From: Kudoa neothunni
Taxonomy: Eukaryota > Animalia > Cnidaria
Direction of reading: 5' to 3'
DNA: 64,000 nt
Assembly (NCBI GenBank): GCA_964304625.1
Contig: OZ199839.1
Span: forward strand, 6,762,234-6,826,233
Below, piece after piece: positions 53,418 to 64,000 of this stretch. Below the pieces are notes generated by a model. It did no database searches. It saw nothing but the letters and a program-made list of their open reading frames with translations, and had not been told where the DNA came from. How positions within the stretch are numbered: position 1 is the stretch's first letter; every line of letters starts with the position of its first letter. The position numbers were made by a program, and so were the translations under genes.

Positions 53418-55005
53418 ATGATTGTTTTTCTGCTAATTAACAGCATTTTTTTATATACTCAACATTATTCAATAATTAATTGGTTTTTCACGTACATCTC
53501 TTTCATAAGTATTATTTTCGAGTTTTATTTATTGTACTTATGATTGATTTTTCTTTTAAATTAATTTTCGTTCTCATTCGGATTATAAAAATCTCACAAC
53601 TCATTTTAGCCTAGATGTATTTCCACAATATTTTTTTTAAATCTACATAAATATAAAAGAATAGAATGTTTTGTGTTACTATTGACGTAGTATATTTATA
53701 TTTGTAATTATTGATTATTTGTTATATAATGCTTTAGAGTCATTTTTATTCTAAATTTTCACACATTAAATCTATTTGTGGGAAAAACAAAAAAGAAAAT
53801 ATCGTCGAATCTTCTATGGATATTATTTGAGAGGAAGAGTTGAAATATTATCGTCAAGTTTATTTGTTTAATTCCAAAAGTATGTTTCGAGTTTATCTAA
53901 TTGCATAAAGTGTTTGTAAAATTAAAAAAGGATTAAATAATTAAATTTTATTTTGTTCGAGATAATTTTTTTCCTAATAACTTAAAATAAATCAAGAGAG
54001 TGAAAATAATAAATACAGTATTTAACCACTTTTTCATTATTATTCGCGTGCATTCAAGAGATATTCCATTGATTTTTCCTCCTTTGAATATAATTTAAGA
54101 AATGAAAGTCGACTAAAAATAATTTTATTTGATATTACATATATATAATTTATTCATTTTCAATAACGTATCACTCTTGTTGATATTTAATTATTAAAAT
54201 TTAATTTTATTCCGCGTGTTTAATCTCTAAATGTAGCTAGATCGTTAATTTTGTGATACAATCAGCAGCATACATTTATTTATAATCGTTCGAGCATTTA
54301 TTTAGTCGTGTTAACTGGATCAACATCGGCAGCCTCGCCTTAAAATTTTATATTCTATTTAGTGTTCTTATTTTTAGCCTAGAAATGAAAATTGGAAAAT
54401 ATATCAATTTTTTTCCATTATTTATATTTATAATAGATTTTATAAATTTGTACGCAACACTTCACATATTTTAATCATTTTCATCAATTCCAGTTGTAAA
54501 TTTTCTAATCCAAGATAATAACATCTCCATTAGTTAAAATTATTAATCAGCTTGAACAATTCTTACCATAATTTCTTCTATTATTCTTCATTAGTTTTTA
54601 ACATATTATAAAGTTACTTTTGTAATAATTAATGGTGGTTAAGACAAACAGTATTATTGGTACACAAAAATTCATTTAACACAAGTGAAATTCTCGAGAC
54701 AATATTCGAGGATGGTTAATTTAATTTGATCGGCCATTAAAAATAAAAATTCCAATTAATAAACTGAGGAAAAATATGTTGATCGCATGATTTAGTAACT
54801 TGGTTATTTTCGTCTAATTTTAATTCAAATCGACTTAAAATTCACATACTAGTTAAATGAATTAAAAACATCACTGCTCAATATATGTTTATCAAATGTG
54901 AAATGTTTATAGAAGAGTTCGTAAATTTAGCTATTGAAACAGAAAAAAATTTAATTATAAATTGTTAATGTTATCAAAAATATGGTTAGTCAAGGACATC
55001 GTTTT

Positions 55006-57911
55006 TTAAAAATAAGAATTTAGTTTTTATTCTTCCAATATCCAAAATAGAATCCAGCACCGAGGATAATGATCAATACTGGAACAATCACCCCAACAAT
55101 TCTATAATGAATAATTAACATAATACATTTTAAATTAGATACATTGTATTTTTCGACCTAAAATAAGTATAAGAAAACATCCTATTATCGTAATTTACGT
55201 GGATTTATTTGATTTTTCACCTAGATAAAAAATTTAAAATTATTTAATAAAAACTTGACAATTACCTTGTTTGATTTCAGCCGAACCGGAAATATTATTA
55301 TCTGTACTGTGAAATAAAACCAATCGGTAATTGGCTGTATCCTCAACATTTTCAATTGTGAATTCCTTGCACAATGGAAACACGGAACAACCTCTATCGC
55401 CAATAACCATACATTTTTTAACAATTGGTTTAGAAACATCTGTCCAATCTCTTAATTCCCATTTGCATAACGATGTTACTGCTACACCGGTAGGAAGAGT
55501 AGTTGATATGTGTAAGGTTTTTTCGTCTCGTGTAATCACCGAGATTAATTGTTTGGTAATATCTGCAGTAGGTGTAGGGAATGAATCTAAATAATAAATT
55601 AATATCAAATATATATATTGAAAATTTATTACATTTCGATATATCAATGGAAGTTTCTTCAGATCTACCAACAGCTGTCACCAAAACTTTATATTCTTTT
55701 TCTGCCTCGTATACTTCATGGAATATAATATTTGTGCATAAAGGCGGTTGAGCGCATGAGGGAATAGCGGTGTTTGTTTTAGAAGATGTTTCATCCTTTT
55801 GCTGTTGACCCTCAGTTGATCTAGCTATTAGTATTTTTGATGCTGCTTTATTGGGTGAATTCCTATTGTTTGTTGAAGGAGATGCGGCCGGGCATTGATA
55901 TATTAAGTCGAATTCTTCCCCCTTCTTTACTTGCACTTTGTAATGGCAAACTATTGTAGGATCTGGGGTCGACAATGCACCTATCAACTTAAAACCTTTA
56001 TCCAGAAATTGCGACTGGAGTGTAAGCACTGACATTGCTAGAAAGAAATTTATTAATTTTTATTTCAAACGTTTGGTTACCTGTTTTTATTTGATGTACT
56101 TTTGACCCATAATCTTTATGTGCAACAACCTTTAGATCATATTCAGTTCCAGGTGTCAAACCTAGGATATTTTGAGTATCTCTACAATAACCTCTGCATG
56201 GATAACTATCTTGACACATCGCACACAACATAAACATCCTTCCCGCGTGGGCTTATATAATAAGCACAGGTAGGGTCTTCATTTGTACGTGCCCCAGTAC
56301 CATCTATCGCCTTTAACGATGATGTTGTTTCTGTTGTTGTTGGGTTTTTTTCCATAAAAGATTTATCTGCGTGTTTTTCTGCCAATAAAAATTCTTTACA
56401 AATTTATTTCATAAATTATATACCCTGTACGAATAAATATATGTTCCTTAAAATTTGCAGGTTTACCGCTTGAATTAGATGATGCGATTTCAAGGATATA
56501 TGACTTACCATTACTGAGTTGCTTAATTGTTAAAACTGTGGTACAGCCGTTGTCACATACCGTTTCGCCGGAATCAATACATTTAGCGCCCACATCAGCA
56601 GCAGGCAGGGGTTTATCGGCTTCATAATAATTTACAGTACAAGATGTGAATACGGTATTTCCTCGTGGCTTAAACAAAGGAACATTTAAAGTAACTCCAG
56701 TTGACGTAAAAACCCGATAATAAGGTTCCACTAGCAGCAGCAGTTTCTGTGACAACTATGAAAAAATTAAAAAATATGTGATATATATCAACTACCAAAT
56801 TTATCCTGAATATATCCAAGGTAATTTGTACCAGTTTTTGCTAATGGTACATGTCTTGTTTGAATCAATATTTGAACCAGAGATTTAGAAGGTTCAAACG
56901 CAAGCTCCACATTATTACATGGTGCATAACAATCTTTTTGGGCCGATCCACAATTCGATTTATAATCATTTTCGCTTGTATTTGTTATTGGTGTTGTGTG
57001 ATCTCTTACACTGAAGCGGCATATTTCGAAGGGGAATTTATTTGTAAATTTTAATAAATACTTATTTTTTTCAGCCGAGCTGTAAGTCAAATAATATTGT
57101 GGTTTGTAAACATCAAATGTTGTTAAAGTATATTTATTCTGAAGTTTGTAAAAGAAACTGGGATAGTTTTCACATCTCATTTCATAATGTGGGATCATTA
57201 AGTCAAATTCAACTTCATTCGCAGTATTTGCATTGGCACAATCATTTCCTTCTGTCCCATCTACGTACTTTACATCCTTGTAAAATATAGGGCATTTAAC
57301 TCGTTTACATGTTATTGTGCTCAGTTTCAATTTACGTACATTTGTGGTTATAGTAACTTGTGGATTCACCAATAATGCTATAGAAAAATATATCAACCAT
57401 TAAATATAACATAATTACGTAATTCGAGACCAAACACGGCTCCACCCCTGAGTCTTTACCTTAAGTGTCTCAATCTGGTCACCAGTGAAAGCAGCAATAT
57501 ACTTAGTTCTTGGAGATAATTTGTCAAATTCTAATTTATTGTCATCTCCGACGCAAGTCCTAACGCATTTTTGAGGAACATTTTCCGTATCATCATTAGG
57601 GCACACAGTAATATCTTCCAAATCACTGTCTTGTTCATTCGACTTTTTAATGTAGCATTTTTTGGAATCTGAATACTCAGTGCCACTTAATATTAAATTA
57701 ACTTTCAGTTTAGTTTGCCCATCCGCTTCCTCCTTCACAAGCTTATAAGTCAGTGAGTTTGTATTAACCGGAGAAGTTTGTGACTGTGCTTGTGAATATA
57801 TGAGAGTGAATTGAGCTATATGATATTTTAAAACGATATTTCATGTTCTTTATATTTACAAAAAAGGACAGTATAAATTCCTAGGAAGGAAACCATATTT
57901 CTCATCGTCAT
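55006..57911 (-). pseudogene. Cys-rich FN3-like type I membrane protein, copy A (three +1 frameshifts; pseudogene or assembly error)
   Basis: Same 10-exon structure as copy B, but with single extra bases at 57445-57448 (CCCC vs CCC), 56708-56712 (AAAAA vs AAAA) and 56227-56228 (AA vs A) that break the frame. Confidence 0.65.
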
Positions 57912-62572: not shown

Positions 62573-64000
62573 CTGTATAATATATAAAATCGATAGCTGT
62601 CGTTCTATATAAAAATAAAAATTCTATTGGTATTCAATTTACGTATACAGGATTATAAACTCGGAGTATAACCTAGTTAATTATCAATATAAATAAAACG
62701 GGTTTGATATTAGAAACAAATTAAATAATAGTAATATGTTAATTTATATTCATTCAAGTTCAATAAAAAAGTTGGTGTAATTTTATTTTTAAAATATTGA
62801 AAGAATTTATATATATATATATAGACTTAAGTAGATTTTATATTGTAGAACTACCTTTAGCGAACACAGTAATGCCCGTTTTTAGTTTATAAATTATAAT
62901 AATAACAAGCAGAAATAATCTTAGATTTTTTTTCGTTTACGAATTTAAGTGTAAACCAAGAATTTTATTTTGTTTTAAGTTAGTAATCTTTGTTATAAAG
63001 TGTACCTATATTTTGTTAATAAAATTTAATTATAATTATTTAGATATACACAGCATTTTTTAAGCCTAAAAAATTGAATTAATTATTTGTTTCAAAGAGT
63101 TATTACCATATAAGATTAAATTTTACTAAAACCATGAAGTTGCAGATGTTTTTTATGATCATTTCAAACAACTGAATTATAATTTATAATTTGTAAAATC
63201 ACTAAATGAAAACTTTTATAAAAACATTCTTTATACTTGTTAGGATAATAACTCGAAAATAAACTTATGTACTGTAATTTATTGAAATTATTTTAGAAAT
63301 ATTGAGTAACATAATATTTTATAAATTTTTAATAAAAATACATTACTTAAATGTATTTATTTCGATATACATATATTTATAGCTACTATTTTTACGGCGA
63401 AAGTTATTGAAAAAAAAGATTTAAGAGGAAGAAATAAATTATATTAAATATATTTGAAACATTATATAAATTAATATATTATTAAACATTAATGACATTT
63501 TTTTAAAACCTTATCGTATTCATGTACAAATATTTAAATTTAACATCTTGGAGAAATACAATACAAATATAATCATTTATCTACTAAAACTAAGTTATAA
63601 AATATTATATTTATTAATTCATTTATTTTACATAAATACCTAGAAGGAGAATTATTGATATCCCAAGTTATCTCAAAATATAAAATATATTATTTATATG
63701 GCAGTGTCTATTGGCCCGACGTGGGGTCAATAGCAACTTCCGATCGGCTGCGACTATTGGCCCTAACAAATTGATTTATTTAATTTTCGAGCCTTTAATT
63801 ATAGTAAATCTGTGTTGTCTGATATAAAACAACTTGCAATTGTGTACTTAATTTTTTTATCGAGTTATATCGGTTAAAAATATTCTGTAGAATGTAATAT
63901 GTTTCGACTAAATGGACCGTAAGAAGTCTTTATATTGAGTTTATGAGTTATTTATTTATTCAAATGAACATTTTTAGTTCTGATTTAACTATTAATTATC

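Follow-up and report, generated by a model that had tools for sequence, protein, structure and literature searches.

Two tandem genes of the myxozoan Kudoa neothunni, which lie in direct repeat on the minus strand and which we call copies A and B, probably owe their present form to paralogs that overwrote one another in segments, leaving old loop sequences in a homogenised background. The genes lie in a stretch of 64,000 nucleotides (the window) of contig OZ199839.1 (assembly GCA_964304625.1, positions 6,762,234 to 6,826,233); positions below are those of the window unless stated otherwise. Repeat finding and self-BLAST gave one strong pair in the window, with a period of ~4.66 kb, and A and B were 95.05% identical over 3616 alignment columns (Table 1). 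Their outer flanks aligned no better than random AT-rich DNA. The two copies belong to a subfamily on chromosome 2, of which A, B and C lie inside 19 kb (C is 10.6 kb beyond B, with 95% identity), and D (91% identity) and the partial copy E lie 227 kb off on the same chromosome. Three further paralogs (F, G and H) were found elsewhere at ~80% identity.

The differences between A and B were strongly clustered in two blocks. A preliminary description of this DNA had noted a uniform backbone with variable patches, and this was borne out; the differences were not evenly spread and mostly synonymous. In a column-by-column comparison there were no substitutions in 54727-55871, 55890-56502 and 56669-57186, and the tracts at 100% identity were 0.5-1.1 kb long. 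The variable loop of exon 4 held ~47 differences, and another ~105 fell in the 5' block that runs from the start of exon 3 through intron 2 and exon 2 to intron 1. The 63 amino acid differences were distributed in the same manner: exon 2 accounted for 35 of them and exon 4 for 21, against 5 for exon 3 and 2 for exon 6. Exons 5-7 carried 0-4 substitutions each. The variable peptides quoted earlier were right and are placed in exons 4 and 2 of the minus-strand gene. All 31 Cys residues of B were retained in A, C and D, in agreement with the claim that the cysteines are kept while many residues change. The introns had been described as identical between the copies; this was true of introns 3-7, which had no substitutions, and not of intron 2, in which 10 of 41 bases differed, as much as in exon 2 (70 of 396).

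We counted the pairwise differences of copies A-D for each 100 columns of the alignment and determined their nearest neighbours for each 120 columns; both switched abruptly along the gene. Copy A matched B and C across the 3' half, was nearest to D in the exon 4 loop, matched C at 61909 and was nearest to copy E over exon 2, exon 1 and the 5' flank. Copy B matched C in the 3' flank, in the exon 4 loop and at 62029-62148. Copies C and D, at loci 227 kb apart, matched at 61550-61670 and again between 62388 and the 5' end, and agreed at 57 informative sites. The 159 parsimony-informative sites of the four copies supported AB|CD (86), AD|BC (60) and AC|BD (13), and they formed 9 runs in which these three incompatible trees alternate (permutation p ~1e-4). 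A GENECONV-type test of the longest identical runs (5000 permutations) gave p = 2e-4 for all six pairs. Because a single duplication history cannot give incompatible trees in successive blocks, these results indicate segmental exchange, and the segmental gene conversion among paralogs that had been proposed from the window is strongly supported.

The homogenised A-B tracts cover silent sites and introns, and the synonymous divergence (dS) was 0 in exons 5, 7 and 8. Breakpoints ignored exon borders. One of them lies inside the exon 2 loop, which in copy C is D-like until the motif CPNDD and then B-like; exchange therefore yields new loop combinations. A search of the whole genome for identical external donors of the patches found none, the best being 91% identical (copy E, for exon 2 of A) and 88% or 96% identical (copy C, for the patches of B). 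Copies A, C and D, frameshifted in the assembly, have tracts in common with the intact copy B, and a role for broken copies as donors, which the preliminary description had raised, would be compatible with these shared tracts.

Diversifying selection on the loops had also been proposed, and this the data did not support. By the Nei-Gojobori method, synonymous change exceeded nonsynonymous change (dN) in the patches: between A and B, exon 2 had dS 0.42 and dN 0.154 (omega, the ratio dN/dS, 0.37), and the exon 4 patch had dS 0.51 and dN 0.21 (omega 0.42). In exon 4, pooled over the subfamily, omega was 0.55 for loop codons and 0.48 for the framework; in exon 2 the pooled value was 0.41 for the framework and 0.84 for loop codons, where some pairs exceeded 1. 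The exon 4 loop reached dS 1.43 between A and B, beside flanks with dS 0. The two forms of this loop (A/D and B/C) differ from each other by dS 1.2-1.5, which is beyond the distance of either form to paralogs on other chromosomes. Because intron 2 is diverged to the same extent as exon 2, the patches are not fast-evolving sequence but sequence that escaped conversion or was swapped by it: they are old, weakly constrained sequence within a recently homogenised background. A pattern of 'hypervariable patches' should thus not be taken as positive selection before synonymous and intronic divergence have been checked.

Exons were searched and folded individually, and the joined coding sequence served to check the frame and to compute dN/dS. 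The modules of exons 2 and 4 were modelled with AlphaFold from alignments of paralogs. For the exon 4 model (mean predicted local distance difference test, pLDDT, 76.9) the top 50 Foldseek matches were all FN3 domains, monobodies or FN3-containing receptors (E ~2e-3 or weaker, TM scores 0.44-0.60; the best with probability 1.0 and TM 0.5-0.6), and on this model it is reasonable to regard the module as FN3-like. The exon 2 model (mean pLDDT 74.6) gave nothing clear in Foldseek. An exhaustive structural alignment (VIA) matched it to the FN3 domains of IFNAR1, IL-9R-alpha and IFNGR1 with Z 5.8-6.6, which the tool rates as 'middling', and this module is tentatively predicted to be FN3-like. A Pfam scan of the exons gave no family at the cut-off; the best score for fn3 (PF00041) was 14.1 bits against a cut-off of 25, and that for FN3_DSCAM-DSCAML_C was 21 against 39.

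In both models strands C and E are separated by a long and largely irregular stretch with three of the four Cys residues, and this stretch was the variable patch. Family-wide column entropy peaked in this strand C to strand E stretch and in the F-G loop, and the peaks coincided with the A-B patches. In exon 2 the A-B differences were enriched in predicted loops (26/70 versus 9/61, p = 0.005), and in exon 4 there was a non-significant trend. The mapping of variable residues onto AlphaFold models, a check suggested with the preliminary description, thus put the patches in the long strand C to strand E loops.

The exons of copy B are joined by GT-AG introns of 40-46 bp, save one of 97 bp, and give an uninterrupted coding sequence. 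Six modules are exon-encoded, with 4-5 Cys each apart from the double-length module of exon 3 with 8. The protein has about seven Cys-bearing FN3-like modules and 31 Cys in total. The variable loop of exon 2 comprises module residues ~59-82, with CPNDD at its centre. Exon 2 ends in the motif GGxVFGLE, which 22 paralogs share. A related protein from a different data set has it too, and there the modules of exons 2 and 3 are contiguous. Because this motif is conserved family-wide, the exon 2 donor was placed at 62081; an alternative donor at 62108 was ruled out by the same conservation. The data support A and B as genes for putative Cys-rich, FN3-like type I membrane proteins, with signal peptide and topology read from the sequence. 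The preliminary description had spoken of a novel Cys-rich FN3-like receptor or adhesin. What stands of this is the Cys-rich, FN3-like type I membrane protein, with FN3 matches for exon 4 and a tentative assignment for exon 2; that the distal modules lie at the surface and act in adhesion or recognition is what we infer.

Table 1. Features of copies A and B, with positions in the window.
Feature	Position	Strand	Remarks
Copy A repeat unit	54569-58177	minus	same exon layout as B; 63 amino acid differences
A exon 4 variable loop block	56503-56668	minus	A/D type
A divergent 5' block	57277-57830	minus	exon 3 start to intron 1; nearest relative copy E, 227 kb off, 91%
A-B spacer	58178-59232	none	unique, 1.05 kb, not homologous to sequence beyond B
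Copy B repeat unit	59233-62836	minus	only fully open frame within the A-E subfamily: 8 exons, 2529 nt, 842 aa
B exon 1	62521-62572	minus	start codon and hydrophobic, signal-peptide-like N-terminus (MTMRNMVSFLGIYTVLF), read from the sequence
B exon 2	62082-62477	minus	membrane-distal 4-Cys beta-sandwich module (predicted)
B exon 3	61459-62040	minus	double-length 8-Cys module, best conserved of the family, at least 445 genomic matches
B exon 4	61089-61418	minus	4-Cys module, predicted FN3-like; pLDDT 76.9, top Foldseek matches all FN3
B exon 4 variable loop block	61165-61335	minus	Cys-stapled, strands C to E; two old forms, B/C type and A/D type
B exon 5	60747-61043	minus	membrane-proximal module
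B exon 6	60299-60703	minus	membrane-proximal module
B exon 7	59921-60252	minus	membrane-proximal module
B exons 5-7 with introns 5 and 6	59921-61043	minus	membrane-proximal modules, homogenised between A and B
B exon 8	59689-59823	minus	predicted transmembrane helix (IVGVIVPVLIIILGAGFYFGYW), 4-residue tail KNKN, stop; identical in A, B and C

The family to which these genes belong is very large. In the 40 Mb of the genome there were at least 445 matches to exon 3, at least 423 to exon 5, at least 344 to exon 4 and at least 279 to exon 2, nearly all of them open frames. A word-based protein search with exon 3 found no homolog, and an ESM Atlas feature search with the same exon gave low recognition and unnamed clusters only. 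A profile of exon 3 (21 copies) was searched against 1.84 billion (1.84e9) public protein representatives and gave 19 matches, all short fragments. Three of the 19 were looked up, and these relatives outside the genome come from short contigs, two of Logan SRR33849685 and one of ENA ERZ795007. Relatives of this kind were 52% identical to copy B in exon 3 and 30% in exon 2, and in a Logan SRR33849685 contig the exon 2 and exon 3 modules share one open reading frame (ORF) without an intron. The family was not found described in the genome paper (PMC12239612) or in the other myxozoan literature searched. These genes are, within that literature, an undescribed orphan family of FN3-like membrane proteins of a myxozoan. 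The family would fill a few percent of a genome of 40 Mb with no more than 5,316 predicted proteins.

Two further observations concern the surroundings of the subfamily. A scaffold gap of 200 N (chromosome 2, 6589486-6589685) abuts the partial copy E, and the missing 3' half of this copy may be an assembly gap and not a truncation. Copies B and C are separated by a 7-kb spacer, in which, past the end of the window (chromosome 2, 6829300-6830614), fragmented minus-strand ORFs matched DDE_Tnp_1_7 (E 2.6e-24 and 1.3e-07); they represent a decayed piggyBac-type DNA transposon between two members of the array.

The K. neothunni genome was recovered with hifiasm-meta from HiFi data of yellowfin tuna, Thunnus albacares (PMC12239612). 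It comprises 40.2 Mb in three chromosomes (N50 12.0 Mb), with a mitochondrial contig of 18,219 bp, and was assembled at ~7x k-mer coverage from a diploid stage, with haplotypic duplication purged; very few parasite RNA reads were reported (PMC12239612). The assembly used here agrees with these properties, with pieces of 17.15, 12.04 and 11.05 Mb. A nematode origin was rejected, as a search for the cuticle-collagen N domain found none. Among copies A-E, B is the only one that is intact in this assembly. Relative to B, copy A has 1-bp insertions at 57445 (exon 2, where it destroys GGxVFGLE), 56708 (exon 4), 56423 (last base of exon 4, at the donor) and 56227 (exon 5), each of which lengthens a single base or a run of up to four by one. 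Copy C has four frame-breaking indels and copy D has many. Three indels and zero substitutions in 1.1 kb of otherwise identical A-B sequence are an odd spectrum.

The read sets were examined for these bases. Only set X1 contained the locus, as short contigs (single-copy depth ~3, covering 81% of the words of the region); runs X5 and X7 (DNA) and X10 (RNA), labelled with the same species, had essentially no parasite reads. Both forms were present in X1 at 56708 and 57445. The extra base of A was not seen in the covering X1 contigs at 56227, 56423 and 57830, nor was that at 54408 in the unique flank; at these four sites the assembly is one base longer in a short homopolymer than every covering contig, and residual consensus indels of the ~7x HiFi assembly may lie behind them. 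The frameshifts of A, C and D may be those of real pseudogenes, heterozygous alleles or consensus errors.

Several points weigh against segmental exchange among paralogs as it is read here. The direction and timing of the exchanges are not inferable from the copies. Pairwise omega values below 1 are compatible with a few positively selected sites, and recombination confounds site tests. The gene model was built from open frames, GT-AG sites and family conservation alone. Several A-specific substitutions were not seen in X1, and because these are often missing too, a missing base in X1 is weak evidence. Read correction at ~7x could have wiped out sparse true differences and so overstated the identical tracts. 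Another explanation would be an assembly artefact, with haplotypes of one locus mis-placed or low-coverage reads of near-identical copies wrongly corrected or joined; the ~7x coverage, the residual haplotypic duplication that needed purging, the scaffold gap adjoining copy E, and the X1 contigs without the letters of A at several A-B sites and without the four extra bases all fit such an origin. It is nevertheless very unlikely. Homology between A and B ends sharply at the 3.6-kb unit, with a unique spacer and non-homologous flanks. No gap interrupts the stretch that holds A, B and C, and there is no N in the window. The X1 contigs cross the unit borders, including the junction of A with the spacer, and carry the private exon 2 patch of A. 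These observations do not describe uncollapsed haplotypes, which the preliminary description had named as the finding that would undo its claim. Divergence in the patches (18-28%, dS reaching 1.4) is far beyond allelic variation, and the blocks tie together loci 227 kb apart (C with D), which mis-joining of reads would not produce. Moreover, the same module organisation was seen in hundreds of open-frame matches.

Across the family the variable loops are under less constraint than any other part of the modules, and on that ground a recent tandem duplication followed by locally faster mutation or relaxed constraint in two loops might be considered, with no exchange at all. Such a history is highly improbable, as it cannot yield the three incompatible groupings of A-D in successive blocks or a loop dS of 1.43 beside flanks of dS 0, and it leaves unexplained why the 5' block of A is nearest to E and its exon 4 loop nearest to D. 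Exchange might on the other hand serve, as the preliminary description proposed, a true system of variant antigens or recognition diversity, in which the loops are under diversifying selection and conversion, from broken copies as well, varies an exposed surface protein. The large repertoire of paralogs, the membrane-distal modules that are most variable both family-wide and between A and B, the loop enrichment in exon 2, the breakpoint inside the exon 2 loop, the tracts that frameshifted neighbours have in common with intact B and the exon 2 loop omega of 0.84 all go in this direction. However, omega was below 1 in every pooled comparison and the dS of the patches was high, intron 2 is diverged as much as exon 2, and no identical donor cassettes were present in the genome. 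The unverified frameshifts of A also count against it. In the fish, K. neothunni is found within muscle fibres, and it is doubtful that antibodies exert pressure on it there. We consider this explanation unlikely, and prefer segmental exchange that left old loops in a homogenised background.

Under segmental exchange, the copies of the subfamily would repeatedly swap segments by ectopic gene conversion or unequal recombination. Over most of the gene, and mainly in its membrane-proximal half, such exchanges would remove differences, also those at synonymous and intronic sites. A small number of old, highly diverged stretches would be left behind or exchanged as blocks. These stretches would be the long Cys-stapled strand C to strand E loops of the exon 2 and exon 4 modules, which are loosely constrained family-wide. 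The locus is a clean and statistically strong example of how this family evolves: the stalks are homogenised, and conversion reshuffles old variants of the loops. Almost nothing is known of how myxozoans, which as parasites of fish matter economically, interact with their hosts at the molecular level. The family is the most conspicuous unexplained gene content of K. neothunni and an obvious candidate for surface antigens, adhesins and diagnostic markers.

Other features of the window and the genome were recorded as well. Just upstream of the array, an exon-sized ORF on the plus strand (50197-50775) matched the Vac14 Fab1-binding region (PF12755, E 6e-23) and represents an ordinary conserved gene. 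An uninterrupted plus-strand ORF of 737 aa (43641-45854) had a Pfam HEAT-repeat match only, and none of the 8000 candidates scored in a word-based protein search with it was a homolog at E <= 1e-3. Diverged direct repeats were present at 24695-25889 and 40912-42060 (80% over 1.2 kb) and at 3552-4367 and 9999-10811 (~73% over 0.3 and 0.2 kb). In the 18,219-bp mitochondrial piece, long ORFs appeared only when TGA was taken as a sense codon, and scans of this piece for tRNAs and Rfam families found nothing.

As a mode of evolution this locus resembles the concerted evolution of tandem families, with identical tracts that include introns and silent sites, sharp borders, incompatible trees, and partners that are adjacent or hundreds of kb away on the same chromosome. 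There is no difference in mechanism, which is already known; the novelty is the gene family, and the family and its host organism are new for this mechanism. The likeness to the FN3 domains of class II cytokine receptors and fibronectin is at the level of the predicted fold only, of exon 4 to FN3 domains and monobodies and of exon 2 to receptor FN3 domains. Unlike known FN3 domains, the modules have a long loop in the strand C to strand E region that is stapled by three of the four Cys, and they score below the Pfam fn3 cut-off.

The VSG proteins of Trypanosoma, var and rifin of Plasmodium, VSP of Giardia and MSG of Pneumocystis are likewise encoded by very large, lineage-specific parasite families in tandem arrays, with Cys-rich ectodomains, mosaics from segmental conversion and apparent pseudogenes among the partners. 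The Kudoa family has no sequence or domain relation to them and differs in its omega below 1, its string of FN3-like modules and its 4-residue tail. The Alr1 and Alr2 proteins of Hydractinia and their Alr family are likewise type I membrane proteins of a cnidarian and have beta-sandwich domains in tandem, of which the membrane-distal one is the most variable, and clustered paralogs and pseudogenes feed their mosaics. No sequence similarity to them was detectable; the Kudoa modules look FN3-like, whereas those of Alr are V-set Ig-like, and the Kudoa proteins are without a signalling tail. Among myxozoans, Sphaerospora molnari has lineage-specific expansions of surface proteins (VSP-like, RIFIN/STEVOR-like and ETRAMP-like), and these duplicated membrane-protein families were proposed to act at the host interface (bioRxiv 10.64898/2026.02.11.705288). 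They are CXXC-rich VSP-like and other types in tens of copies, as against hundreds here, and no fibronectin-type modules are mentioned among them. It is doubtful that the Kudoa family is a real diversity-generating recognition system, in which Cys-stapled loop cassettes and half-loops are exchanged in combination among hundreds of paralogs, also broken ones. If it were, it would hold an open-ended repertoire with which parasite cells evade immunity, bind to host cells or tell self from non-self among themselves, and would be an FN3-based cnidarian counterpart of VSG/var mosaicism or of Hydractinia Alr.

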